A stretch of DNA of 64,000 nucleotides, from the sequence record NC_010811.2, one strand, 5' to 3'. Below the pieces are notes generated by a model. The model saw only the letters and a list, made by a program, of their open reading frames with translations, was not told where the DNA came from and ran no database searches. The position numbers and the translations under genes were made by a program. This document shows positions 1 to 63,700 of this stretch, piece after piece (positions within the stretch are counted from its first letter, which is position 1; each line of letters starts with the position of its first letter).

Positions 1-1230
1 AAAAGCAACAACCGGATCCTACCGGCCAACGCGCGAGCGGCTGACGTCGCTGAACGCGCCATCCAAGAAATTATCCCTGTGCAACAGCGTCGCTACTACG
101 ACGCATTCCGTCCGCAAGGGATCAAGGCGATCGCATATAATCGTCTGCAACAAGGACGTCCGTGCTCGTGTCAAGCTCAACGCAAGACCGTGAACGGACT
201 TCTGAACGAAGAAGGCAAAGCCAGTCCGGGTCTGATCAATCAGATGCTGACTGGCAATATGAGCTTCAACGTCACGCCGTATGGTCACGATCAGGGCCGT
301 GCGTATCCAGATGCGGCAGGGGCCGACGGACAGACGAGTCCACTGGCACCAGTCAACAAGAATCAGGGCGTGTTCGACATTGTGACTGCAGGCGGTGAGG
401 AGTTCCCGTTTGCGCACAGCGTACCTGACGAAGAAGCATTCGGCGACAACGGACCAAGCTCGCCAGTGGACATCGACTCGCTGGTTGCTGACTTCGACGT
501 GTCGGCCCTTGGATACTCCGACGTCGCCTGCCCAATCTGCTTCGGGAACGGATTCATCGGTGGCTACGCGCCGTTCAACAGCAATCGTATCGTGCTGACG
601 GTCACCGACTTGGTGCTGATCAACGGGACTATCGACACGACCGAGAAGCCGTTGGTGGCGCGTGACGTTCAAGGCTTCAATCAGAAGGTGGTTCTGCCGC
701 GAGGGGCGCTGGCCGTCGAATCGTTCACAGTGTGGAACGGATTGCGACCGGTTCCCGCCACCTTCCTCATTGACGGCGTGGCCGTGACCGGGGACGCTGC
801 GGTGCTCGCTCGCTGCGACGGCAAGCCGCATCTGCTGACCGCGCAGTTCACCGGGGACTTCACGCACCTGGAACTGCAATTCACGATGTCTGATCAAAGC
901 CTGTACTTTGAGCTGCCGCGTCGTCCGTCGACCAGTGACACCTCGCTGCTGGAACAGATGGAACCGTTCCAGATCATCCTCAGCCCGAACATCCCTCAGG
1001 TCGAGTCGATGGACGTGCTGGTGGAAGCGCAGTATGGCAAGACGCTGGTCGTGCAGAACGTCCATCCGTGGAACAGCCGTCAGCGCAACATTCTCGGATG
1101 GGAATGCCAAGTACGTGTGATCCAACCGCAGGAGATCTACCGCATCCTGCCACAGATGCCGCGTACGCTCAACAAGAATGCCGCCACCATGATGGCGCGC
1201 GACAACCGAACCGGTGTGTATCGCACCTAA
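1..1230 (+). CDS. Virion structural protein with Cys motifs (possible neck/head-completion protein); 5' end lies outside the window
   Basis: Frame is open from base 1 (KSNNRILPANARAAD...) to TAA at 1228-1230. Contains PCSC and CPICFGNGFIGGY motifs and sits among morphogenesis genes. Function is inferred from context. Confidence 0.45.
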   Translation, partial: KSNNRILPANARAADVAERAIQEIIPVQQRRYYDAFRPQGIKAIAYNRLQQGRPCSCQAQRKTVNGLLNEEGKASPGLINQMLTGNMSFNVTPYGHDQGRAYPDAAGADGQTSPLAPVNKNQGVFDIVTAGGEEFPFAHSVPDEEAFGDNGPSSPVDIDSLVADFDVSALGYSDVACPICFGNGFIGGYAPFNSNRIVLTVTDLVLINGTIDTTEKPLVARDVQGFNQKVVLPRGALAVESFTVWNGLRPVPATFLIDGVAVTGDAAVLARCDGKPHLLTAQFTGDFTHLELQFTMSDQSLYFELPRRPSTSDTSLLEQMEPFQIILSPNIPQVESMDVLVEAQYGKTLVVQNVHPWNSRQRNILGWECQVRVIQPQEIYRILPQMPRTLNKNAATMMARDNRTGVYRT

Positions 1231-1252
1231 TACAACAAACACTCAGACTGAC

Positions 1253-1861
1253 ATGGAATCGATTCAAGCCCTTGAAGTGCCGAAGCTGCGGTACCTGGAC
1301 GACGCTGTTCGCTTTCTAGCGGACATCAAGCTGCACACCACGGCCAGCGGTTGGAAGCGCGTTGAATTCTTCTACGAGAAGTACCGGCTGTTGGAAGCAG
1401 TGGAAGTGCAGGTCAGTCTGCAGTTCCCGGACCGGGGCGGACAGGTTATGGGCGGGTTGCTCACCACTCTGGCACGCCTCAAGCTGCAAGCCGCCGAGCA
1501 GCTCCAGATGCATTTGACTGCTCTCAACGAGGAAGCAGAAGCCAACATCAGTCCGCTGGCGTCGCGCTTCTGCCTGCAGTTGCGTTCCGAACTGCTGAAG
1601 ATGCGTGGCATCGGCCGCTTCATCGCCTCCTATTTGTACCGCGACGGCGCAACGTTCACTCACTACATCCAGTTGGCGGATGTGGGGCGCGCCAATCACG
1701 TGTATATCAGCTGTCACTTGGGGGAGAAGCGCTTCATCAAGCTGGCACACGAATTCGAGCTTCCGCCGTATGTGGCTAAGGACCCCGGACAGGCTGTGGT
1801 CACCGTGGACGATGCGGTGGCCGCCATCCGGCGACTCATCAAAGAGGAATTTGGGAAATGA
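1253..1861 (+). CDS. Hypothetical protein (probable virion/head protein)
   Basis: ATG at 1253 (MESIQALEVPKL); stop overlaps the next start (ATGA). Carries AxxRL-like segments (TLARLKLQAA, AAIRRL). Confidence 0.6.
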   Translation: MESIQALEVPKLRYLDDAVRFLADIKLHTTASGWKRVEFFYEKYRLLEAVEVQVSLQFPDRGGQVMGGLLTTLARLKLQAAEQLQMHLTALNEEAEANISPLASRFCLQLRSELLKMRGIGRFIASYLYRDGATFTHYIQLADVGRANHVYISCHLGEKRFIKLAHEFELPPYVAKDPGQAVVTVDDAVAAIRRLIKEEFGK

Positions 1862-2568
1862 AGAAAGCCACTGATCTGTTCCAAACACGTGATCGTGTTG
1901 TGGGACGTCGCGGTGCAAATGGCACTGAGCAACCTCAAGACCAGCCGTACGACAGCATGCAAGTGGATGATGAACTGCCGATCGGCATGTCGCGGGGCAA
2001 TCAATCGGATCACAGCGTGAACGATGTGGTGCAGCCCACGATTCCTGTGACTGGCGCCATCCGTCGTCTGCAGACGACTGCTGCCTCCAAGTATCCGCCG
2101 CTGCGTCAGCCACTGCCCAAGGAACCGCCCACGTACAACATCGTCGGGTACCATGCAACACCCATCGACAATTGGGCCTCGATCAAGGCGAAGGGACTGG
2201 CTATCGGCAAGTCGTCGCCCGCAGCGCAAGACTGGGTCGGTAAGTGGAGCGGCAAGGCCGTCTACTTCCATCTGCAGTTCCCTTCGCACGAGCTGGCGAA
2301 CGGCTACGACCCAGATACTGGCGAACCGTACACCATCACCATCGAGACCAAGCTGCATCACGGTGCGGAGTATTTCGTACCGGACGAAGATGCAGCGACC
2401 AACGTCGATGAGACGCCTGACGTCATCCGTCACAAAGGCTCGATCGCCGTCGGTTATCCAACGCCGCCCGGCGACTTCATCCGCGTACATCTGGTCGACA
2501 CGCTGGCCGCTCGCGCATGGGCCAAGGCCAATGTCAAGCGCTGGCCCGTTACCTTCCACAAGGTCTGA
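1858..2568 (+). CDS. Putative ADP-ribosyltransferase-fold protein with an N-terminal pro-region
   Basis: C-terminal ~150 aa has GYHATP..NWASIKAKGL, then AVYF and a downstream acidic FVPDED, resembling the H-Y-x ART core (YHGT..I...GL). It is preceded by the TGAIRRLQTTAA motif. Confidence 0.55.
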   Translation: MKKATDLFQTRDRVVGRRGANGTEQPQDQPYDSMQVDDELPIGMSRGNQSDHSVNDVVQPTIPVTGAIRRLQTTAASKYPPLRQPLPKEPPTYNIVGYHATPIDNWASIKAKGLAIGKSSPAAQDWVGKWSGKAVYFHLQFPSHELANGYDPDTGEPYTITIETKLHHGAEYFVPDEDAATNVDETPDVIRHKGSIAVGYPTPPGDFIRVHLVDTLAARAWAKANVKRWPVTFHKV

Positions 2569-2570
2569 TC

Positions 2571-4130
2571 ATGGCAACTCCTACTCCGCTCCTGTACAAC
2601 AAAGATCCGAACCAAGACACGATCATCGCGGCAGATGTCAGCCCGTGGCTATTGACGGGCGAAACGCTGACCAGTATCGCGCTGCTGCCGGTGTCTCCCA
2701 GCACCACGCCTGCGCTCACCGCTACACTGATCAGTGCGCCGAACATCACGCCCGCCAACATCACGCTGTCAGGGGGCGTAAACGGAGTTAGCTACGGATT
2801 CCAACTGCAGGTGACGACCAACGCGCGTGTGCTGCTGGTCCAAGTCGCCGCTTCCTGCTATTCCAATCAGCAGTTCGATCCGTACACAGCGCAGAATCCG
2901 TATGCGTACCAGGACCTTGTTGACCAGCTGGAAGTCGGTCAGTCTGCGGTGGGCACCGCGGTCTTCGCGTTCCCACCGCAGATCGATCCGAAGGGTGGCA
3001 ACGTCCGATACGAACTGCTGGCCGACGACGGCACCGTGTTCTCCACAGGCAACGCCTTCTCCTACGTGATCTCCAGCAACGGGCTGGCCAACATCGTGAA
3101 AGCGCAGTGCGTTGTGGTGGCGCCTACCACGTTGCCTCCGACGCTTCTGGGTCAGTCGTATCAACTGCGATACACGCTGGAGCTTCCGCAGTCGTCCGGC
3201 ATTCCTGCCGATCCACTGACCGGCAATCTTGGCCAGAACACGTTCTTCCAGTTCGAGAACATCACGATCGTGGACAACGTGAGCGTGCCGCTTGGTGCGC
3301 AGCCCACGGTCGAGCTCAAGGGCATGCCCGCGCATCTGTCGCTGGTCACGGACAAGATGTACGACAATGTGACGTTGGAGCTGCAAGCCAACAACCAGAC
3401 GCTGGCTGGTCCCAGTCCCATCACCGAATATCAGCGAACTGCTGACGGATGGGCATGGTCCGGTGTGCTGGACACGACGAACCTCACAGTGTCGCTGGTG
3501 CCTTACACCATCGTCTGGCGTTACTGGTCGTCCGCTGCGCCAAGCCTCGTGTATCAGGAAGCGACCGAGCTGTTCGTGGTGAATGCCAGCATGCTCACCG
3601 CCATGAACGATGTGCGCGCTCGCATCAACAAGGCGCATACCACGCTGTACGGAGCACCCGACATGCTATTCCCCAATCCCACCGTGATGACGTGGTTGCG
3701 TCGAGGCGCTGACATGTTCAACGGTGCGTACGGTCAGTTCACCGCCTTCACGATGACCAACGCGCTGGGCGTGATCCGCGAATACTGGCTGATCTGCGCT
3801 GAGAAAGCCGCGCTCGAAGCTCAACTGCTGGCCGAGGGTGAGAAGGCATTCAACTTCCAAGGCGCTGCCATCTCGTTGGACGTGGACCGGGTCACCGCCT
3901 ACGACAATCTGATCGGCAAGCTCCAGCAGCAGTTGGACACCGAACTCAAACCCATCAAGCAGAACCTCATCATCAAGGGCGTTACCAAGGGCGACGGATC
4001 GACCGATCCCACCAAGCTGCAAATCGGTGCGATCGGTGCAGTGGGCATCTCCATCACCAACGCCAACGTCTGGGGTCGCGCGGGTACGCCTTACGGTGCG
4101 TTCGGCCTCAACCCTGGAGGACTCACATGA
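2571..4130 (+). CDS. Putative head-tail connector/neck protein (multidomain)
   Basis: ATG at 2571. N-terminus KDPNQD..AADVSPWL..GETLTS resembles phage head-tail joining domains; beta-rich middle; helical C-terminus (EAQLLAEGEKAFNFQG..ISLDVDR). Structural context. Confidence 0.45.
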   Translation: MATPTPLLYNKDPNQDTIIAADVSPWLLTGETLTSIALLPVSPSTTPALTATLISAPNITPANITLSGGVNGVSYGFQLQVTTNARVLLVQVAASCYSNQQFDPYTAQNPYAYQDLVDQLEVGQSAVGTAVFAFPPQIDPKGGNVRYELLADDGTVFSTGNAFSYVISSNGLANIVKAQCVVVAPTTLPPTLLGQSYQLRYTLELPQSSGIPADPLTGNLGQNTFFQFENITIVDNVSVPLGAQPTVELKGMPAHLSLVTDKMYDNVTLELQANNQTLAGPSPITEYQRTADGWAWSGVLDTTNLTVSLVPYTIVWRYWSSAAPSLVYQEATELFVVNASMLTAMNDVRARINKAHTTLYGAPDMLFPNPTVMTWLRRGADMFNGAYGQFTAFTMTNALGVIREYWLICAEKAALEAQLLAEGEKAFNFQGAAISLDVDRVTAYDNLIGKLQQQLDTELKPIKQNLIIKGVTKGDGSTDPTKLQIGAIGAVGISITNANVWGRAGTPYGAFGLNPGGLT

Positions 4131-4625: not shown

Positions 4626-4985
4626 ATGTTGAAGAATGCAGTACACCGTCTGCGGGCTACCGCCGTTCAAGAGCTGGAAGAAGAGCAAGAAGTCGTTGCT
4701 CAATTCGACCGCACCAAGGACAAGGAACTGCGAGATCTGCAAAACGCTATGCGTGGGGGTGGAGTCGTCTTCAAGTTGGATAAGTACCACCTCTACCATA
4801 AAACGAATCAACGGGAAGTCGCCGAGGAGTTGATGACTGTGTTGAAGATCTTGGATCAACTGGGCCACAAGGCTCGTGTTGTTCCCGGGGTCCTTGCACG
4901 TCCCACCTTCAGCGTGAAGTGTGAAACAGGTCTTGTTCTCCAGCGTCTCAACAACGACGTCCGCCTTTTCTTCTTTATTCCTTAA
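4626..4985 (+). CDS. Small hypothetical protein with AxxRL leader (putative internal head protein)
   Basis: Starts MLKNAVHRLRATA; 119 aa. Confidence 0.6.
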   Translation: MLKNAVHRLRATAVQELEEEQEVVAQFDRTKDKELRDLQNAMRGGGVVFKLDKYHLYHKTNQREVAEELMTVLKILDQLGHKARVVPGVLARPTFSVKCETGLVLQRLNNDVRLFFFIP

Positions 4986-4994
4986 GGAATCATC

Positions 4995-5489
4995 ATGAGT
5001 CAACAGATCAACCATACGCAAGCCAAAGCTGCGCTGACGGCTGCCGGTTTTCCGGTGTCGGCTGGCAGCAACTGGAACAACGTGGACCAAGGTTCGTGGG
5101 ACCAGTTCGCAGCCAGCGCTGCCTACGGAAAAGTCGCCTACGACCTGTACTCGACCAACTACGGTTTCTCGTTCCCCGTGATGCCGGACGCGGTGGCCAA
5201 TGCTGCTGCGAGCGGTGCCTACAGCGCCACTCTGGGTGTGACGCCGCTGACCGCTACGCATGCGGTTGCCATCACCAACTTCGCTTGGAATCTGGTGGAA
5301 ACCAACGGTCCGGGTACGTCGTACGTGTGGGACTTCGGCGACGGCACCGGCACGACGACTACCAGCACGGCAACGGGTCCTGCGAACCACACGTATGCAA
5401 CGGCTGGCTCGTACACGCCGAAGGTCACGGTCACGGTGGGTGGCGTTCCGCACCTCATCTCGGCCGCAGCTCCGGTCGTGGTGTCGTAA
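4995..5489 (+). CDS. PKD (Ig-like) domain protein, probable virion surface/decoration protein
   Basis: Canonical PKD signature YVWDFGDG...NHTYATAGSYTPKVTVT; SD-like AAGGA upstream. Confidence 0.8.
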   Translation: MSQQINHTQAKAALTAAGFPVSAGSNWNNVDQGSWDQFAASAAYGKVAYDLYSTNYGFSFPVMPDAVANAAASGAYSATLGVTPLTATHAVAITNFAWNLVETNGPGTSYVWDFGDGTGTTTTSTATGPANHTYATAGSYTPKVTVTVGGVPHLISAAAPVVVS

Positions 5490-5806
5490 TGTACGCCCGT
5501 CGCGTTCGTTCTCGAGCGCGAAACGGGTACGGCATATCCTCCATCCGGCGCGATTCGTATTCTACGGTGAACGGTATGAATACGAAAGCCGGATGGTGGG
5601 AACTCCATCGGCAAGTTGAGAAACGATCCGGTGGGCTATGCGAAGCCCGGATCGCCGGAGTGCGATGCGGTAAGCGCGGCAAGGACGTTCACCACATCGT
5701 AAAGCTGAGTGATGGCGGTACCAACTCGATGGCTAATCTTATCCATCTGTGTGAAGACTGCCATGACCGTAGACACAACCACATGTTCCGGAGACGGAAG
5801 AAATGA
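5489..5806 (+). CDS. Small HNH endonuclease
   Basis: ATG at 5489 overlaps the previous TAA. CEA..RC...DVHHIVKLSDGGTNSMANLIHLCEDCHDRRH is a zinc-binding HNH motif. Confidence 0.85.
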   Translation: MYARRVRSRARNGYGISSIRRDSYSTVNGMNTKAGWWELHRQVEKRSGGLCEARIAGVRCGKRGKDVHHIVKLSDGGTNSMANLIHLCEDCHDRRHNHMFRRRKK

Positions 5807-6114
5807 CGTACAACATCAGCGCAGCAACAAAGCGTCTCCAAGGTAGCTTGGAAGTCAATGCCAACAAACTGAAGACAGCCAAAGATGTGCATCGTGCACT
5901 GTCCTTCTACCCAGGTGTCGTGAAAGACAAGGGGATCATGGCCGAGCTTGCCGAAAAGGGGGATGCGCCAGCACCGAAGGATGCTTTCGTTGAGGTACGC
6001 GGGTCGCACATCGTTCCGAAGCATCTCGAGCACATGCACGATCTCGGGATCGAAATCGTATCGATCGAAGTTCTTGGTAGCGCTCATTACGAGCTGCAGG
6101 TGAAATTCCACTGA
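5803..6114 (+). CDS. Small hypothetical protein with AAxxRL leader (putative internal head protein)
   Basis: Starts MTYNISAATKRLQG; 103 aa. Confidence 0.65.
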   Translation: MTYNISAATKRLQGSLEVNANKLKTAKDVHRALSFYPGVVKDKGIMAELAEKGDAPAPKDAFVEVRGSHIVPKHLEHMHDLGIEIVSIEVLGSAHYELQVKFH

Positions 6115-6121
6115 AGACATC

Positions 6122-6508
6122 ATGGCCTACGACATCACAGCAGCAGTCAGCCGCTTGGCTGGCACCAAGTGTGCAGTGTTCGCCGATGCACACAGCGAAG
6201 CGGGTATCGCGCTGAAGGAGATCGCCAAGATCCTGGGTCCGCACTTCCTCAAGGACGAGCGGCCCGGCGAGCAGGTCATCATCTGGCGTACTTCTCAGTT
6301 CAAGGCTGAGCTGTCGCTGAACTTGGACGACGACGTGCTGGACTTCACGTTCAAGGACAAGGGCGCCACCGCTGGCTTCTCGGCCGAAGGCTACAACGCG
6401 CGAACCCTGTTCCAGGACATTCGGCACAACATCACGCAGTACCGTCCGACCAAGAAGGTGCCGACGGACGTGCAGATGGTTCGTGACAAGTTCGAACATC
6501 TGCAATAA
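6122..6508 (+). CDS. Small hypothetical protein with AAxxRL leader (putative internal head protein)
   Basis: Starts MAYDITAAVSRLAG; 128 aa. Confidence 0.65.
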   Translation: MAYDITAAVSRLAGTKCAVFADAHSEAGIALKEIAKILGPHFLKDERPGEQVIIWRTSQFKAELSLNLDDDVLDFTFKDKGATAGFSAEGYNARTLFQDIRHNITQYRPTKKVPTDVQMVRDKFEHLQ

Positions 6509-6517
6509 GGAACGATC

Positions 6518-7420
6518 ATGGATCAAGAACGACTGAAGCAACTCATCGCGCTGTTCCTCGAAGCAAACCCGGAACCCAGCGACGCGCAGTTCCACGCGTT
6601 CGCCGAGTCGCTGGGCGTGGACAAGGAAACGCTGGAAGCTGTGTGCTACGAAATGCTGGGCGCTGAAATTCAGCACGAGAAGGACGAAGGCGACGATCAG
6701 CAGTTGGAGGAGCTGGTGGAAGGCGTGTCCACGCACTTCCCTGAAGGCATCGAGGTCGAAGACTTCGGTGTGGTGCAGGCCACGGCGCGACTGCGCCTGA
6801 CCGCTGCTGAAATCGTCGAGCAAGAAGGCGGCGGACAGGGTGAAGTCGGTATCAGCGAACAGCAAGAAGTGTTGCAGGGTGAAGGCGACGCCGAAACCAC
6901 GGACACCGACAACCTGCTGTTGACGGATGGCGCTCCGGTCGGTGATACGACGGACGACGAGATGCAGGACAGCGCGTTGAACGACGGCGCAGGTCCGGGG
7001 GATACGGGTTTGGGCATCGACACGCAGAAGGCATTGCTGCTGAACGATGGGGCACCTGCTCTGCAGCTGGAAAGCGCTGCCCTGCGGCTGACCGCTGGTG
7101 AACGACCTGAAGTATTCGGGATGCCTGCTTACCATCTGTCCAAGAGCAGCGGCACGATCGACCAGCTTGGTCAGGTAGCCGACCGCAAGCCCGAGAAGAT
7201 CACTGGCATTGCAGTCAACACCCCGAAGGGCACAAAGAAGTTCTACTTCTACGGGTCTTCGTCGCTCACCAAGAAGGTCGGCGCCTTCATCAAGTTCAAG
7301 GGCATGAACGGCATCGTGGACGTGCTGGGCGTCATCGACAAGAACGGCAAGGTCAAGACCGGCCAAGAAGGTGCCACCTACGATCGTTCTGACCGGCGTC
7401 CGTACTACGTCTTTAAGTGA
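6518..7420 (+). CDS. Acidic pro-region plus basic C-terminal domain; putative head core/cargo protein
   Basis: About 190 aa rich in D/E with two internal motifs (ATARLRLTAA, SAALRLTA), then about 108 aa Lys-rich beta domain. Confidence 0.6.
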   Translation: MDQERLKQLIALFLEANPEPSDAQFHAFAESLGVDKETLEAVCYEMLGAEIQHEKDEGDDQQLEELVEGVSTHFPEGIEVEDFGVVQATARLRLTAAEIVEQEGGGQGEVGISEQQEVLQGEGDAETTDTDNLLLTDGAPVGDTTDDEMQDSALNDGAGPGDTGLGIDTQKALLLNDGAPALQLESAALRLTAGERPEVFGMPAYHLSKSSGTIDQLGQVADRKPEKITGIAVNTPKGTKKFYFYGSSSLTKKVGAFIKFKGMNGIVDVLGVIDKNGKVKTGQEGATYDRSDRRPYYVFK

Positions 7421-7427
7421 GGGACCC

Positions 7428-7727
7428 ATGTACGACATCAAAGCCGCGGTCAATCGCCTGCAGCTTACGGCCGACGCCAAGAGCACCATCATGATGCGTG
7501 TGGAGAAAGCGCTGGAAGCTGCGGGCATCGAGTGTGAGGTTGCTGGCAACAGCATTCAGGCGCCGCAGGCTCGCGTCCCGGAAGTCCTGCGTATCCTCAA
7601 GACGCTGGGCCTGCACTACATGGGGCCCCAGACGCGAGGCAATCACACGTTCAACTACAATCGCACGAGCAAGGAGTTGGGATGGATCGACTACTGCCCG
7701 CGTCGCGAACGTATCGACTTCGACTGA
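7428..7727 (+). CDS. Small hypothetical protein with AAxxRL leader
   Basis: ATG at 7428 after GAGGGA; MYDIKAAVNRLQLTA. Confidence 0.65.
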   Translation: MYDIKAAVNRLQLTADAKSTIMMRVEKALEAAGIECEVAGNSIQAPQARVPEVLRILKTLGLHYMGPQTRGNHTFNYNRTSKELGWIDYCPRRERIDFD

Positions 7728-7734
7728 GGGTTTC

Positions 7735-8067
7735 ATGATCTCAATCAGTGCTGCGCTTTTGCGCCTCGCGTCTACCGAAGTACAGGCCGGTTCCCCGTCC
7801 GCTGCCATCAACGCAATGGAATACGTTGAGCAGACGGTTCGCAAGGCAGGGCTGGCCGTGCAAGACATCGATCACCGGGACACGACTCACATCGCAATGA
7901 CCATCAGCGGTCAGTTCGTGCCGGTGCTCAATGCGCTGACCAAAGCCGGATTCGTTCCGGACCGTACGCAGAAAAAGGGCAGCTTCTACAAGCGGCAGGG
8001 CATGGGTACGATCCGAGTGACTGCCGGTGTCTCGTTCCGTGAAACCATCGTCATCTGTCTGGGTTGA
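7735..8067 (+). CDS. Small hypothetical protein with AAxxRL leader
   Basis: ATG at 7735 after GAGGG; MISISAALLRLASTEVQA. Confidence 0.65.
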   Translation: MISISAALLRLASTEVQAGSPSAAINAMEYVEQTVRKAGLAVQDIDHRDTTHIAMTISGQFVPVLNALTKAGFVPDRTQKKGSFYKRQGMGTIRVTAGVSFRETIVICLG

Positions 8068-14566: not shown

Positions 14567-15367
14567 ATGGCAAAAGTGCCTCAAGCATTCACGCAGGCGA
14601 AGCGTGCGCAAGTGCGTAAGCCTCAGGTCGCATCCGAAACCTCGATGGAGGATGCAATCCTGACGCGTCAGGTCAACACCTATCAGCAATCCATCGAGAC
14701 GAAGGACGCGGAGCACGATCAGACGCTGCTGCACGGGTTGGATTTCACGACATGGTTGCCGTTCGCGGCTAAGACCTATCGTATCAGCCCGCGCATCGAG
14801 GACTACATCCTCGTCACGACCGTGATCTGTCCGTCGGAAATCCCGAACCGCAACGGCATCGCGTTCCCGACCTCGGAGCTGGTGACATTCCAGCCACCTC
14901 CGATGAACCGGATGGTGTACAAGGCGTGGGCTGGATGTCCGGTGCATCTGGAACACGATAACGAAGTTCACGAACGAGCCTACGGCGTGATCCTCGACAC
15001 GTCGTTCCACAAGGTGGAAGGCTACGGTGGCGGCAGCATCTGGAAGGTCATGGGGCTTCTGGCAATCGACAAGCAGAAGAATCCGGACATCGCCCAGGAA
15101 GTGCTGCAAGGGTCGATCGACACGTACTCCATGGGTGCGCTGGTTGACTACTTCACGTGCGGATACTGCGGAGCGGAGAACACTGGTCGCAATCGCTGTT
15201 CGCACATCACGTCTATCAAGGACGTGAACTTCAACCTGCACAAGGACTGGAATGGGAAGTCGCATCTCTCGTTCCTCAATGCGCATGGCATTCAACCGAT
15301 CGAGTGCTCCATCGTCCGTGATCCGGCGTGGGCTCCTGCACTCAGCGACGCCGTGAGGGAGTGGTGA
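14567..15367 (+). CDS. Putative prohead maturation protease with a Cys/His zinc-finger insert
   Basis: PNRNG.AF, PVHLEH, YSMG (candidate nucleophile Ser), CGYCG..RCSH and ECSIVRDPA resemble HK97/assemblin-type prohead proteases; lies upstream of the scaffold and MCP. Confidence 0.65.
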   Translation: MAKVPQAFTQAKRAQVRKPQVASETSMEDAILTRQVNTYQQSIETKDAEHDQTLLHGLDFTTWLPFAAKTYRISPRIEDYILVTTVICPSEIPNRNGIAFPTSELVTFQPPPMNRMVYKAWAGCPVHLEHDNEVHERAYGVILDTSFHKVEGYGGGSIWKVMGLLAIDKQKNPDIAQEVLQGSIDTYSMGALVDYFTCGYCGAENTGRNRCSHITSIKDVNFNLHKDWNGKSHLSFLNAHGIQPIECSIVRDPAWAPALSDAVREW

Positions 15368-15828
15368 TGTACGAGATCAAAGCGGCGGTTGACCGCCTGA
15401 AAGCAACGGAGGTCGTCGCTGGATACAGTGGCACGAAAGTCGGTGACCTCAACAAATATGTCCGCGCCCTGAACCCGAAAGTCAAACCCATTGGCAACTC
15501 GGGTATGGGCGGCGGTGGTCGTGCTGGTGAAGCTGCGTGCTTGGTATCGGCCGAAGACGCATTGGATTTGGTGAACGCCCTGATCAAAGACGGATGGACA
15601 GGACGCCGTACTTCGAAGAGGGCCGGTCCTCCAGGACGAGAAGCTACGAAGTACGAGTACATGATCTACCGTCCGAAGGACGATCTTCCGGGTCTTCCGT
15701 ACATCACCGTGTCGAAGCCCGCGTCCGATGGCAAATGTCGTATCCGCTTGAGCCAGGAAACTGCTGCTGCAATTCGTTCGCGTCGCAACAGCAAGTTCAT
15801 GTTCAATCCGGTCAAGCGTTACAAGTAA
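15367..15828 (+). CDS. Small basic hypothetical protein with AAxxRL leader
   Basis: MYEIKAAVDRLKATEVVA; start overlaps the protease stop. Confidence 0.65.
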   Translation: MYEIKAAVDRLKATEVVAGYSGTKVGDLNKYVRALNPKVKPIGNSGMGGGGRAGEAACLVSAEDALDLVNALIKDGWTGRRTSKRAGPPGREATKYEYMIYRPKDDLPGLPYITVSKPASDGKCRIRLSQETAAAIRSRRNSKFMFNPVKRYK

Positions 15829-25458: not shown

Positions 25459-26207
25459 ATGGATACCAATACCATTTCGATCACCGACTACCAAATGGTG
25501 AACAAGCGTCTGGCTCGCGTGGTCGTCGCTTTCACCGGCAACATGCAGAAGGAAGAAGTGCGCGATCGCATCGCTGAGCGCTTCGACAATCTGGCGACCG
25601 TGGTCCCCAACAGCTTCCAGGCCTGGTGAAGGCCAACGTGGCAGTCGGATTCCTGCGTGCCAACAAGGAAGTGCGCGTGGTCACCGAGAAGGAAGTCCGT
25701 GCATCGTATCGCACGCTGGCCTCCAACATCATGATGGACAACCGCGATCGCTCGCTGTGGGAAGTCAAGGAAGGCGACGGCGGCAAGTACCTGGCCCGCC
25801 ACGGCCACGAAGATCTGAGCGAGCTGGTGAGCGCCAAGGTGCACCATCGCCAAGACATCCCGAAGGTGCATCACATCGCAACGGCTGCTGCAGTCGCCGG
25901 TGAGTTCGCCACGTTCGTCAGCAAGACTGGCGAAGTGGAACACGGCTTCGTTCTGCAGGCCAACGCCACTCACGCCAAGGTGTTGCCGATCTCCACTCGT
26001 GTGCCGGAAGTCGTGGCCAACGTGCAGATCACCCAGCTGTCGCGCGTTCCGGTCCGTAAGTCGGTCCACGCGCAGATCGTGAAGGCTGGCATCATCTCGG
26101 CCGAGGAGAAGGCCAAGTCCAAGGAGTACTACGAGAAGCTGTACGGGTACGACGCCGACTATCTGGCGCAGGTCATCAACGAAATCGAGACGACGACCTT
26201 CGTCTAA
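25459..26207 (+). CDS. Probable single head/core protein interrupted by a -1 frameshift at about 25626
   Basis: MDTNTISITDY...SFQAW stops at TGA 25627-29; GTG at 25626 continues in the -1 frame (VKANVAVG...) with no SD. One extra G would join them into about 249 aa. Confidence 0.6.
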
Positions 26208-26220
26208 GCCGTGCCCAACG

Positions 26221-26250
26221 AAAAAGCCCCGCTAAATAGCGGGGCTTTTT
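26221..26250. terminator. Bidirectional intrinsic terminator between the convergent structural and replication blocks
   Basis: AAAAAGCCCCGCT-AAAT-AGCGGGGCTTTTT. Confidence 0.85.
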
Positions 26251-26261
26251 GCTTTGCTGCT

Positions 26262-26810
26262 TCAGTGAAGAATGCGCGGCACAGTCTGCTCGTCTTCATC
26301 GTCGCACGTGCAGTGCTTGGCGCAGGCCCCACAATCACCACAGATGGGGCCGCTGTGCTCTTCTTCATCCAACGTGGAAATCACGTCAATGACTTCATCG
26401 TCATCGTCGCTGTCCTCGTTGTCCTCCTCGTAAGGCAAATCCAGCAGCACCTCCTCTAGGATTTCGGCCTCCTCTTCTGGGTTCATCATGCACTGCGCTT
26501 CGGAGATCAGCTCCTGAAGCGAGTAGTAGCGCTTGTCAACCGGCATGCCGTCGCCGTCCCGCACTGCAAGCCCCTGATGCAAACAGTGCAGCGCATTCTT
26601 GGCACTCGCCGCCCACATGATGATCAGGAATTCAAACACCCCGTGCGGCAGCGGATCCGTCGGCTTCTTGCCAAGTGCCTTGAGCAGCAGGTCTTGCATA
26701 CTGATCAGCCATTCGAGGAACTCCGACTGAATGGGGCGCTCGGTATCCGCGTGCGGCCCCTCTTCATCCCATTCCTTCGCCTTCTTCAGCAGCTCAGTCA
26801 GAATCGCCAT
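26262..26810 (-). CDS. Hypothetical acidic protein with a Cys-rich C-terminus
   Basis: 182 aa; long E/D tract followed by CGDCGACAKHCTC. Confidence 0.6.
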   Translation of the reverse strand: MAILTELLKKAKEWDEEGPHADTERPIQSEFLEWLISMQDLLLKALGKKPTDPLPHGVFEFLIIMWAASAKNALHCLHQGLAVRDGDGMPVDKRYYSLQELISEAQCMMNPEEEAEILEEVLLDLPYEEDNEDSDDDDEVIDVISTLDEEEHSGPICGDCGACAKHCTCDDEDEQTVPRILH

Positions 26811-59638: not shown

Positions 59639-60343
59639 ATGCCGAAGATCAAAGCTGAAAAGCAAGCAACTGATCCACCAAAGAACGACAAGGACTTCAC
59701 GTGGCAGAGGAACATGGAGAAGAAGTATAAGGGCGCACCTAAGCGCAATCCAGGATCCGCGCCACCTGAAGGAACCTTCAGCAAGAGTCCTTCGCAGATC
59801 GCCAACGATCTGAAGATGCATTCGAAGGACTACGGGCAAGCGAGTCGTCGGCTGAACAGCTACATCAACCGACAAGGTCGCAATCTTCAGGGAGCGGATC
59901 GTGCGCGACTGTACGATGCGAAGGAACACCTGAAGAATGCCTACGGCCGTCAGGAACATAAGCCGAAGCAGCAGACGGCAGACAGCAGCGCAGGGCCTGC
60001 CCTGTACTGTTTGACGAAAGGACACAACCTTGACGATGGGACAGTGGATTTGCTGACGTCTGTCCCAGATCTACGGGAGAAACAAGCCGTGAACGATCAT
60101 CAGCTACTTGCAGCATGTGCTCGCCTGAAGGCCAGCGTATTGAACTCGGAACAGGATCCGAATCAGCGCATGTCGTCGGTTGAAGTGCAAAGCGACAGCA
60201 CAGTAGTTCCCAACCTGGAAGAGACCAACATCGCAGAATCCACATCTACCATTGATGGACTGGACACTGCGTTCGAGGAGGGACAGGGCGGGGCACCCAT
60301 CAACATCAACGCAGCGCTTCACCGTTTGCAGTCGCCAGTCTGA
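59639..60343 (+). CDS. DUF3175-like N-terminal domain protein with AAxxRL motifs
   Basis: GTFS.SP.QIA..LK...RRLN.YINRQGRNL...RARL..AK..L resembles DUF3175 (from memory); C-terminal LAACARLKA and ININAALHRL. Confidence 0.5.
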   Translation: MPKIKAEKQATDPPKNDKDFTWQRNMEKKYKGAPKRNPGSAPPEGTFSKSPSQIANDLKMHSKDYGQASRRLNSYINRQGRNLQGADRARLYDAKEHLKNAYGRQEHKPKQQTADSSAGPALYCLTKGHNLDDGTVDLLTSVPDLREKQAVNDHQLLAACARLKASVLNSEQDPNQRMSSVEVQSDSTVVPNLEETNIAESTSTIDGLDTAFEEGQGGAPININAALHRLQSPV

Positions 60344-60362
60344 TTGTTGTCAAGGCAGCTAC

Positions 60363-60370
60363 AATTTGAT
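60363..60370 (+). promoter_or_regulatory. AATTTGAT motif
   Basis: About 56 nt before the ATG at 60427. Confidence 0.45.
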
Positions 60371-60426
60371 TTCGGGGGTGGGGGCACCGCCGTTATCTAT
60401 TCTAGCTGCATTGACTGGGACTCAAA

Positions 60427-60639
60427 ATGGACGACATTGATCGCATCCAAGACCGCTACGATCACGAGCATCAACAGGCTATCAATAAGATCCGAGAACG
60501 GGCGAAGAAGTCCTTGATGCCGACGGGGCATTGTTTCTTCTGCGGAGAACAGGTGAAGCATCCGCTTCTCTTCTGTGATTCTTTCTGTCGAGACGACTAC
60601 GAGCGTGAACAACGAAGTCGCCGTATCAACGGTTTGTGA
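60427..60639 (+). CDS. Small C4 zinc-finger protein (DksA/TraR-like architecture)
   Basis: MDDIDRIQD helical N-terminus followed by CFFCG...FCDSFC. Confidence 0.65.
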   Translation: MDDIDRIQDRYDHEHQQAINKIRERAKKSLMPTGHCFFCGEQVKHPLLFCDSFCRDDYEREQRSRRINGL

Positions 60640-60641
60640 TG

Positions 60642-60671
60642 CAAGGGCCTCCTAATTAGGAGGCCCTTTGT
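60642..60671 (+). terminator. Intrinsic terminator
   Basis: Perfect palindrome AAGGGCCTCCTAATTAGGAGGCCCTT followed by T-rich sequence. Confidence 0.7.
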
Positions 60672-60684
60672 CGTTTGACCTGCG

Positions 60685-60692
60685 AATTTGAT
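60685..60692 (+). promoter_or_regulatory. AATTTGAT motif
   Basis: CTGCGAATTTGAT after the terminator, about 38 nt before the ATG at 60731. Confidence 0.55.
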
Positions 60693-60730
60693 AGCAACAC
60701 AAGCCGCCAACTGAAGTCAAAGGATTGGTC

Positions 60731-63700
60731 ATGGATCTCGTCATCAAACAACAGGCTTCGGGCACTGGATTGCCCGCAGTCACGGAACAATCAACATCTA
60801 CGTACCAAGCTGGGTCCATCATCACCCAGACCATTCTTCTGCAACCCACGGGAACGACGGGAAGCACGTATTCGTCGCCAGTGGGCTTTAGCCATCTCTC
60901 GCTGACGGTGACTGGCGCAGTTCAGTTGACGGGAACGCGGGCGGGTAACACCAGCTATCTGAATCAGATCGTCAATCAGTCGATCTCGATCGACGATACC
61001 GTGGACTCGTTTGTTGTGACCAACACGACGAACGTGGCGGTCACGGCGAAGATGACGTACACGGTGGCCATCACCAACGCGACGCCTCTCCCATCGCTGG
61101 TGATCAGCGTCAATGGGATGACGGGAGCGGTGACGGTTGATGCAGCCAATCTGCCGGGACTTGCTACAGTGGCGAAGACCGGACTGTACACTGATCTGGC
61201 AGGAGCGCCAGTGTTGGCGCCAGTTGCAACGTCGGGCAGCTACACCGACCTCACGAACAAGCCGACGATCCCAGCAGCGCAGGTCAACAGCGACTGGAAT
61301 TCGACTGGGGGGCTGTCGCAGATCCTGAATCGTCCGACGCTGGCCGCAGTGGCCACGAGTGGTCTGTATAGCGACCTGACTGGGAAGCCAGTTCTGGCCA
61401 CGGTTGCGACGAGTGGGCTGTACAGCGATCTCACTGGAAAGCCTGCGCTGAAGGCAGTGGCAACCACGGGCAGCTATGCCGATCTGCTAAACGTTCCCAC
61501 GTTCGCCACGGTTGCTACGAGCGGCCTGTACAGCGACCTCACGGGAAAGCCAGTGTTGGCGACGGTTGCCACTAGCGGTTCTTATGTTGATCTGACGAAC
61601 AAGCCTGCATTCGCTGCAGTCGCAACGTCGGGCAGCTACACGGATCTGCTGAACAAGCCAGTGTTGGCACAAGTCGCGTCCAGTGGTCTGTATAGTGACC
61701 TGATCGGCGCTCCGTCGTTGGCCGCAGTCGCCACGAGCGGCAGCTATCTGGATCTGCTGAACAAGCCCGCGTTGAAGCCAGTAGCGACGAGTGGTGCGTA
61801 CGCTGACCTCACTGGGACTCCGACGCTGGCAACGGTCGCGCTCAGCGGTTCGTACACGGATCTCTTGAACAAGCCTGCTGACTATTCGCTGCCTGCGGCT
61901 ACTGCGGTTTCGCTTGGCGGTGTGAAGATCGGCGCTGGCATCACTGTGACGGTGGATGGCACGATCAGTGCGTCGACCGGTGGTGTGTCGAGTGTTGGTT
62001 TGGCGATGCCGTCGGACTTCACGGTGACCAACAACCCGCTGACGGCAAACGGCACGCTCATCGTCAATCGTCTGGCGCAAAACGCCAATACGTTCCTTGC
62101 AGGTCCAATCTCAGGGAATGCTGCGATTCCCGGCTATCGTACGATTCAGTGGTCGGATCTGCCAGTAGCCACCACGCTCAATCCAGGAGTTGTGCGTCTT
62201 GGGTCCGGCGTCAACTACACAGGCGGCGCACTCAACGCAAACGTGACGACAGTTGCAGGTCGTACGGGTGACGTGTTGCTGGCAGCTACCGACGTGAGCG
62301 GACTGGCTACTGTTGCGCGTACTGGCAACTACAGCGACCTGAACGGACTCCCGTCGCCATACGTTCTGCCTACGGCCAGCGGCACGGTGTTGGGTGGCAT
62401 CAAGGTGGGAGCCAATCTGTCCATCGACGGAAACGGGGTGCTCAGTGCACAGAACTCGTTCGTGTTGCAACCGGCCACTTCGTCAGTGCTCGGTGGAGTG
62501 AAGATTGGAGCCAACGTGAGCGTGGCTGGTGACGGTACGATCAGCGTTGCTGCTCCGTACACGCTGCCTGTTGCCACATCCACGGTGTTGGGCGGTGTGA
62601 AGCAGGGCACCAACGTGAGCGTGGCTGGCGACGGGACGTTGAGTGTGGCGACCGCCAGCAGCACGGTTCTGGGTCTGGTGAAGGGTGGTGGAACCAACAT
62701 CACCATCGCAACGGACGGAACGCTGAATGTACCGACGGGCGCTGGCTACACTTTGCCAATCGCCACGACTAGTGTCGTTGGCGGTGTGCAAGTGGGCAAT
62801 GGTCTGGCTGTGACCGCAGGCGGATTGCTGTCTACCAACATCCAGACGGTGGCTGGCGTCAGCCCTGTGTCTGGTGATGTGCCGCTGGCTGTCGCCAACA
62901 TCACTGGCGCCGCGCCGCTGGCAAGTCCGACGTTCACGGGCGCACCTGCTGGTCCGACGCCTACGGCCGGCGATCAGAGCACGAAGCTGGCAACCACGCA
63001 ATTCGCCTACAATCTTGTGTCTGGTGTACAGACCGTGAACGTGGCGGGCGGGGTAGATGTGACGTTGACTCCGACGCAGTATGGAGCGGGCATTCTTCTG
63101 CTGAGCGGTGCGCTCACTGCGAACATCAACCTCATCCTTCCGGCGCAAGGAGGCAACTACACCATCTACAACGGGACGACGGGCGGGTTCACAGTCACTG
63201 CCAAGGCATCGGGCGCTACAGGCACCACGGTAGCTATGGTGTCCGGCCAGACCTACAGCCTGATGTGTGATGGGACGAATGTTCGTGCGCTGGGGGGTGG
63301 AGCAGGGTCCACCTTCTTCTCACGCACTTCGTTCTCCGCCACTGCTGGACAAACGACGTTCAACGTCACGTATCCGCCGGGCGCACTCATCGCGATCGTG
63401 AATGGTGCCGTGGTGTCTACCGCCAACTACACGGCAAACGACGGGGCGACCGTAGTCTTCAATCAGGCGTTGGACGGTACCGAAGAAGTCGTGTTCTTGG
63501 TGTGGACCGCGTTTGCGGTAGCCAACGCGCTGCCGTTGAGCGGCGGAACGATGGCAGGTCCCATCACGTTGACGGGCAACGATACGTCGGTCACACAGGC
63601 GACCGCGGACAGCAGCACGAAGCTGGCCACTACGGCGTTCGTTCACACGGTGGTCGCCAGTGTGGCGCTGGCGCGCGCCGTAGTAACGCTGGGCAACCTC

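Follow-up and report, generated by a model that had tools for sequence, protein, structure and literature searches.

ORF117 is a small gene of the Ralstonia phage phiRSL1, a 231-kb jumbo myovirus, and its product appears to consist of two modules: a conserved N-terminal part that ends in a short leader motif, and a C-terminal ADP-ribosyltransferase (ART) domain of an unnamed family. The reading towards which I lean, by a little, is that this is a protein of the head or neck gene block whose leader module would bring the ART passenger into the phage particle, from which it would be delivered to modify a target in the host. The gene lies in a 64,000-nucleotide stretch of sequence record NC_010811.2 (the window), whose first 8 kb match positions 62001-70000 of the phiRSL1 record at 100% identity; coordinates are window positions unless stated otherwise (Table 1). 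An earlier first-pass annotation, made from the letters alone, had described an open reading frame at 1858-2568 by quoting short peptide strings, and all of these strings are present.

Because structural matches and an independent sequence profile agree, the C-terminal domain almost certainly adopts an ART fold, as modelled, and its place on the H-Y side of the superfamily, nearest to DarT and Tpt1, is established. An exhaustive phmmer search recovered 40 representative relatives of this domain with E-values down to 2e-66, excluding P0002, a metagenomic homologue that is 79% identical to ORF117; its motifs are thus no chance resemblance. The family alignment comprises 36 sequences, with members down to 24% identity with ORF117. 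From this alignment AlphaFold2 modelled aa 66-236 with a predicted local distance difference test score (pLDDT) of 92.6 and a predicted template modelling score of 0.85; the single full-length sequence gave a pLDDT of 36 and no usable model. Foldseek, the check that the first-pass annotation had proposed for an ART fold, matched nothing but ARTs in the PDB, in the order DarT (E ~3e-4), Tpt1/KptA, pertussis- and cholera-type toxins, and PARPs. Swiss-Prot models rank the ART relatives in the same order, searches of AlphaFold clusters, BFVD and the ESM Atlas concur, and the VIA-align matches are all ARTs, with DarT first. The family sequence profile matches DarT1 (E 4.7e-4) and Tpt1 (2.5e-3); diphtheria toxin, exotoxin A and PARP2 match it weakly, and every one of these matches falls on the Y-H-x-T...GL segment. 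The earlier assignment to the H-Y-x clade, a clade other than that of the T4 protein Alt, is thus borne out by the invariant H99/T101 and Y136 and by the structural and profile matches to DarT and Tpt1.

The domain belongs to neither the DarT nor the Tpt1 family, and no curated family covers the protein. A Pfam scan of ORF117 at E<=1 touched PARP alone, with no DarT, PTS_2-RNA or R-S-E family model, and the PARP match (PF00644) was confined to aa 94-137 and stayed below threshold (11.6-12.1 bits; cut-off 26.7). Sub-threshold matches to PARP occur in 18 of the 36 family members and to PTS_2-RNA in 3 of them. The DarT model (PF14487) found nothing in ORF117 at E 1 and nothing in the phiRSL1 genome at E<=0.001, in a search whose controls were silent; the Tpt1/KptA model (PF01885, PTS_2-RNA) likewise matched nowhere in the genome, in a search whose controls matched in 3 genomes. 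PHROGs, NCBIfam and PADLOC hold no family for ORF117, phmmer against the PDB returned only chance haemagglutinin matches in the N-terminal region, and a scan of IMG/VR with a closer subset of the ART alignment found one locus.

ORF117 is likely, judging from its conserved residues, to be an active nicotinamide adenine dinucleotide (NAD+)-dependent enzyme. Four residues (H99, T101, G113 and Y136) are invariant among the 36 sequences and five more (I109, G117, Q124, D176 and E177) are conserved in >=90% of them. The canonical strand-5 position, where I take DarT to carry its catalytic glutamate, corresponds in ORF117 to S194 in a variable column; this rests on a weak DarT1 alignment whose second segment, with an i-Evalue of 90, is not significant alone. 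The 8baq chain of DarT has an alanine at that position, presumably an inactivating mutation. The acidic pair D176/E177 of the FVPDED string lies just after strand 4, 17 residues before the S194-aligned position, and because the canonical position falls on an unconserved residue the pair can be called no more than a candidate catalytic element. D176/E177 may provide the catalytic acid, or the enzyme may be independent of a glutamate, as Tpt1 is. The lack of conservation at strand 5 also suits the idea that the ART fold is catalytically inactive, binding NAD+ or ADP-ribose or purely decorating a small head or neck protein, as does the existence of a homologue that carries no cargo (P0035, below) and is presumably functional without one. 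I consider this very unlikely, since the H-x-T, the tyrosine, the glycines and the acidic pair are invariant or nearly so in relatives down to 24% identity, the ART domain has a ratio of nonsynonymous to synonymous substitution rates (dN/dS) of 0.17, and both H-Y-D variants and the glutamate-less Tpt1 are active ARTs (PMC5512222, PMC9503650).

The N-terminal 76 residues are, by comparison of homologues, a lineage-specific, conserved and selected module. Three proteins (P0040, P0041 and P0035) match ORF117 in phmmer at aa 3-76 only, and a word-index search with aa 1-80 found ORF117 and P0002 only. The alignment of the module, with 5 homologues, has 20 invariant columns and ends in V-x-x-A-x-x-R-L-x-x-T; among the invariant residues are L7, Q9, T10, R13, P41, G43, M44, S50, V54, N55 and V57-P60. 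Between ORF117 and P0002, dN/dS is 0.14 overall; the module (aa 1-76) has a value of 0.10 and the ART domain one of 0.17. What follows the module differs between homologues. P0041 carries a C-terminal GNAT domain above the Pfam cut-off, the C-terminal domain of P0040 is not an ART and is read as a GNAT from a similar motif, and P0035 is the module alone, 69 aa long, ending right after the leader motif. An IMG/VR jumbo-phage contig (L015:3995-5285) has two tandem paralogues, read as GNATs, upstream of the head-tail connector gene. The first (L015:3995-4705) has a full 75-aa module and a C-terminal domain read as a GNAT via the weak match of its paralogue; the second, between the module gene and the connector, has about 10 residues before its leader (LSVQSSIRRLQMTA) and a sub-threshold GNAT match. 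Because this second paralogue has the leader without the full module, the leader is suggested to be the minimal retained element.

Downstream of P0040, P0041, P0035 and the L015 pair alike there is a homologue (511-522 aa) of ORF118, the connector gene that follows ORF117. The first three abut it directly, and the contig of P0035 has a phiRSL1-like gene order. Because the module homologues beside the connector gene carry a GNAT, an ART or nothing, this slot has, on comparison of the sequences, three states: no cargo, GNAT and ART. The exchange has a sharp edge, as homology with the GNAT-bearing proteins ends at aa 76 and ART homology to the other family members begins at S77-K78. The first-pass annotation had proposed about 75 disordered residues forming a pro-region that ends near SKYPP. 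A separate region does end there, the alignment placing the boundary exactly at A76|S77, and aa 1-60 are indeed acidic, hydrophilic and disorder-promoting (grand average of hydropathy -1.15, 72% disorder-promoting residues, low model confidence). The free-standing 69-aa P0035 and the dN/dS of the module, lower than that of the ART domain, speak against a mere pro-peptide.

Because homology with the GNAT proteins stops at the leader and the ART domain starts there, aa 61-76 are a possible docking peptide or processing site. The motif, A-x-x-R-L-x-x-T/S in its general form, recurs at the N-termini of ORF111, 112, 120, 123, 124, 126, 127 and 133 and of a gene on the minus strand near record position 148676. 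N-terminal-type matches number 25 in phiRSL1 and 6 in a reversed-genome control, and about 12 of the 25 are in real genes clustered at record 60-78 kb, a stretch that begins about 2 kb ahead of the window and reaches window position 15.4 kb. Within the first 20 residues the leader occurs in at least 11 phiRSL1 proteins, with two further copies inside ORF125; the gene immediately after that of the head protease is ORF133. No recognisable Pfam domain was found in the leader-bearing phiRSL1 proteins. Around the connector genes of BcepSauron, BCSR5, Motura and metagenomic relatives the leader is just as common, and in the ART homologue P0003 it forms the first residues. In BcepSauron, BCSR5 and Motura the slot gene encodes an acidic protein containing the motif, at the extreme C-terminus in the first two. 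Achromobacter phage Motura gp162 (L009:5187-5711, 174 aa) starts with a leader, MEIQAAVRLQAS, immediately followed by LYHGTT, and it matches the rifampin ART family Arr-ms weakly (E 0.18). It may be a second case of a leader plus a minimal ART near a connector gene; when the ART profile was compared by hhalign with gp162 and with ART-PolyVal repeats, nothing but the H (and Y) motifs aligned. A T4/phiKZ-like x-x-E cleavage was considered as a general rule, several phiRSL1 leaders being followed by T-E or A-E, and was rejected because the leaders of relatives are not. Pfam returned nothing for the annotated head protease, ORF132.

Relatives of the ART domain occur in proteins that themselves point to delivery. 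P0038 (2371 aa) combines MuF, an ORF117-type ART and an HD domain, and is preceded by a 509-aa gene that I take to be a portal gene. P0006 (1552 aa, from an ENA contig) runs from a 2H/LigT phosphoesterase through an ORF117-type ART to a CCA/poly(A)-polymerase head and directly follows a Portal_Mu gene; it looks like a set of RNA-end-processing enzymes, apparently carried inside a phage head. In P0004 (1538 aa), encoded close to Portal_T4 and an S77 prohead protease, an ORF117-type ART accompanies six ART-PolyVal domains; P0009 is 1.8 kb from a terminase gene and P0021 4.5 kb from a portal gene. Because the module carries a GNAT or no cargo in the same connector slot, and because this kind of ART occurs in portal-adjacent and MuF-fused giant proteins, the comparative context favours delivery of ORF117 with the virion and supports the first-pass proposal of an Alt analogue from another ART clade. 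The translational coupling of ORF117 to ORF116 and ORF118, and the NAD salvage genes and macrodomain of phiRSL1, count in favour of this reading as well. That ORF117 is virion-associated seems, on this context, rather probable; that it is cleaved is somewhat unlikely.

Several observations weigh against the reading of ORF117 as a particle-delivered, modular enzyme. RefSeq labels its product hypothetical, whereas that of ORF135 is a virion structural protein, and only 25 virion proteins have been reported for phiRSL1 (PMC5348500). No consistent protease-type cleavage motif follows the leader across phages, and hhalign of the aa 1-76 region against the slot proteins of BcepSauron (gp093) and BCSR5 (QRE00257) was not significant beyond the motif. 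The strand-5 position is variable, as described above. P0003 is beside replication genes and Listeria phage LIS04_213 near an RNA-repair-type nucleotidyltransferase, neither of them near head genes. The last two contexts also speak for a different explanation, in which ORF117 is not packaged but acts late inside the cell, either as a Tpt1-like ART of RNA 2'- or 5'-phosphates working with ORF054 in RNA repair or as a modifier of phage structural proteins or DNA during assembly. ORF054, the only macrodomain of phiRSL1, is of the Appr-1''-pase type, and a KptA-2H-Macro pathway has been described (PMC9503650). The HxT and Y-x-H-L of ORF117 align to YVHLS of Tpt1, and P0006 carries 2H and CCA/poly(A)-polymerase domains. 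Yet the N-terminal RNA-binding lobe of Tpt1 is absent, about 20 residues preceding strand 1, and there is no PTS_2-RNA match in ORF117, nor in the phiRSL1 genome at E 0.001. An N-terminal module whose cargo differs between phages at the connector slot, together with the portal and MuF contexts, is hard to reconcile with housekeeping repair, and P0006 itself directly follows a portal gene. I therefore regard an unpackaged intracellular role as improbable.

ORF054 (record 25897-26433; L016:1378-1914) is annotated as an appr-1-pase family protein and matches Pfam Macro with 21.4 bits (E 3.4e-5). It lies about 38 kb from ORF117, and no NADAR or ARH homologue was found in the phiRSL1 genome. It could reverse or process the ORF117 product, which makes it a candidate eraser or processor.

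Because the nearest folds are DarT and Tpt1 and because P0006 fuses this ART to 2H and CCA domains, a nucleic acid is a somewhat likelier target than a protein, and by analogy I would call a nucleic-acid target an even bet. The same delivery with a host protein as target (such as RNA polymerase or translation factors) would make ORF117 a functional analogue of T4 Alt and of the ARTs of polyvalent proteins. T4 Alt is a precedent (PMC5512222), the cargo in sister phages is a GNAT, phage GNATs and polyvalent ARTs have been proposed to modify host proteins such as RNA polymerase (PMC7824862, PMC5512222), and PARP, exotoxin A and diphtheria toxin are among the profile matches. Nevertheless, the closest folds by every measure are those of the nucleic-acid-directed DarT and Tpt1, the domains fused in P0006 (2H phosphoesterase, CCA/poly(A)-polymerase head) provide an RNA-end context, and, going by the weak DarT1 alignment, ORF117 lacks a conserved glutamate where protein-modifying H-Y-E enzymes have theirs in strand 5. 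A protein target thus seems fairly unlikely.

Under the favoured reading of a delivered two-module protein, module 1 (aa 1-76) would tie the passenger to the assembling head or neck and may act as a docking or capsid-targeting peptide, which the head protease would possibly remove near A76|S77. The ART would travel in the particle, enter the host with the DNA and ADP-ribosylate a host target, likelier a nucleic acid or a nucleic-acid end than a protein. A broader proposal, which I hold only tentatively and think rather unlikely as a whole, is that A-x-x-R-L-x-x-T/S, alone or after an acidic module of about 60 aa, is a general address label, not described before, by which the RSL1/Saruman/Motura jumbo phages load a changing cargo into the particle. 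The cargo would include many small proteins, the DarT/Tpt1-like ART and GNAT acetyltransferases. The connector slot would then be an effector-exchange cassette and ORF117 the first virion-delivered nucleic-acid ADP-ribosyltransferase.

Table 1. Coordinates of ORF117, its parts and related features (window positions unless marked as record positions; aa numbers refer to ORF117)
Feature	Position	Strand	Residues	Remarks
ORF116, conserved upstream partner gene	1214..1861	+		coupled to ORF117
ORF117 coding sequence (RSL1_ORF117, YP_001949992.1)	1858..2568	+	236 aa + TGA	ATG start; annotated 'hypothetical protein'
Acidic hydrophilic N-terminal part of module	1858..2037	+	aa 1-60	conserved among homologues
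Leader motif TIPVTGAIRRLQTTAA, core A-x-x-R-L-x-x-T	2038..2085	+	aa 61-76; core aa 67-74	
ART domain, unnamed H-Y-[D/E] family	2086..2565	+	aa 77-236	AlphaFold2, Foldseek, profile matches
H99-A100-T101, strand-1 H-x-T NAD+-binding motif	2152..2160	+	aa 99-101	invariant H/T; aligned to HFT of DarT1, HGT of Tpt1, HGS of ART-PolyVal
Y136, strand-2 triad tyrosine (AVYFH)	2263..2265	+	aa 136	invariant; aligned to YVH of Tpt1, GFYF of ART-PolyVal
D176-E177, nearly invariant acidic pair, end of strand 4	2383..2388	+	aa 176-177	candidate catalytic acid outside canonical strand-5 position
ORF118, head-tail connector/adaptor gene	2571..4130	+		PHROG 17327, E 5e-136; Pfam Gp77 (N-terminal domain), 31 bits
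Leader-bearing open reading frames	4626-8067; 15328-15828			
Leader-bearing open reading frames, outside the window	record 60166-61115			
Leader-bearing gene, outside the window	record ~148676	-		
String GAIRRLQTTAA			aa 66-76	
String SKYPP			aa 77-81	
String GYHATP			aa 97-102	
String NWASIKAKGL			aa 105-114	
String AVYF			aa 134-137	
String FVPDED			aa 173-178	

ORF117 is translationally coupled to both neighbours. Its ATG shares an ATGA with the TGA stop codon of ORF116 and has a purine-rich AGAGGAA some 10 nt ahead of it, and 2 bases separate its own TGA from the ATG at 2571. ORF116-like sequences precede the connector slot in BcepSauron, BCSR5, L005, L014 and L015 (translations compared by eye), and L025 has an open reading frame similar in size to ORF116 at the equivalent position. 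The ORF116 homologues L014:1320-2654 and L015:1724-3091 are about twice as long (444-455 aa) and start with an N-terminal leader of their own (MKTKATQRLKAS and MKINAGRRLKATA). The annotated start of ORF118, at 2517, overlaps ORF117 by 51 nt. It is probably too early, and the true start is likely ATG 2571, because the counterparts of ORF118 in BcepSauron, BCSR5, Motura, L005 and L015 start at the ATG that corresponds to it. Upstream of ORF117 are genes of nucleotide metabolism and NAD salvage (pncB, NUDIX), and the genes for the head protease, major head protein, sheath and tube lie 12-24 kb downstream, so that, with the connector gene next to ORF117, the 'virion gene cluster' of the first-pass annotation is a fair description. 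ORF121 (4995-5806) encodes a PKD domain (Pfam PKD_4, E 2.9e-8) and is followed by the HNH endonuclease gene ORF122; both sit in the middle of the run of leader-bearing genes, and BCSR5 has two PKD-type paralogues at the matching place.

A virion-delivered phage ART is a kind of weapon already predicted in the literature, and the idea of head delivery is not new in kind, because head-packaged phage ARTs have been predicted before (PMC9503650, PMC5512222). About 44% of phage ARTs were argued from their gene neighbourhoods to be head-packaged, especially in myoviruses (PMC9503650, section 3.7.1), and ART and GNAT domains stand side by side in injected polyvalent proteins (PMC5512222). A literature search, supplementary catalogues aside, found no description of a DarT/Tpt1-like family lacking a curated model, of a MuF-independent carrier module or of cargo exchange in a connector slot, and ORF117 is mentioned in no paper that it returned. 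A search for RNA-seq of phiRSL1 infection turned up metagenomes only. Experimental knowledge of head-carried phage ARTs comes almost entirely from T4 Alt, the others being genomic predictions. ORF117 is small and tractable and comes from the half of the superfamily to which Alt does not belong, closest to enzymes that ADP-ribosylate DNA or RNA, and its phage has been investigated for the biocontrol of bacterial wilt. If ORF117 is delivered and acts on a nucleic acid, the DarT chemistry of bacterial anti-phage defence would also serve host takeover by a phage. The cargo-swapping module and its leader offer a handle on how particle contents are chosen in this phage group and could serve as a tool for loading foreign proteins into the heads of phages grown in laboratory strains.

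Compared with its nearest relatives in fold, ORF117 differs in both sequence and setting. DarT, the single-stranded DNA thymidine/guanosine ADP-ribosyltransferase of the DarTG toxin-antitoxin system (PDB 7omu, 7omv, 8baq), shares only 11-18% identity with it. DarT belongs to a chromosomal toxin-antitoxin pair and is adjacent to the macrodomain protein DarG, whereas ORF117 is a gene of a phage head module whose neighbours are ORF116 and the connector gene ORF118, without a macrodomain. Of the RNA 2'-phosphotransferase Tpt1/KptA (PDB 8tfz, 8tg4, 9ld6) the NAD+ lobe alone aligns, over 85-98 residues; in place of the N-terminal RNA-binding lobe with its catalytic Arg/His, ORF117 has only aa 77-96 before strand 1. 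T4 Alt is of the R-S-E clade and ORF117 lies on the H-Y-x side: the R-S-E features of Alt and VIP2 were not found in ORF117, where strand 1 has a histidine and no E-x-E precedes the presumed strand 5 (KGSIAV, from the weak DarT1 alignment). What Alt and the MuF-associated or polyvalent ARTs would share with ORF117 is a predicted life cycle in which the enzyme is expressed along with the head genes, travels in the particle and enters the host together with the DNA.

For the leader, the closest parallels are the internal proteins of T4, with their capsid-targeting sequence, and the ejection proteins of phiKZ and SPN3US, with their pro-peptides. The likeness is that of a short N-terminal signal on many small proteins of the head region, sometimes ahead of an enzymatic cargo, and it is a lead rather than a test. 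The cleavage motifs of T4 and phiKZ are Glu-specific and unrelated to A-x-x-R-L-x-x-T/S. Unlike those signals, the motif of the phiRSL1 group is not followed by a consistent acidic P1 residue, and it is internal in ORF117 and C-terminal in some slot proteins. Polyvalent proteins have several effector domains and often MuF; ORF117, with one effector domain and no MuF, falls outside that definition, and ART-PolyVal (PF18760) aligns to its family at the H and Y motifs only. What carries the ART in ORF117 is instead a lineage-specific module of 76 aa that includes a short leader. Its relatives P0004, P0006 and P0038 are polyvalent proteins by the same definition, and the pairing of ART and GNAT at the ORF117-type slot matches that seen in polyvalent proteins (PMC5512222).

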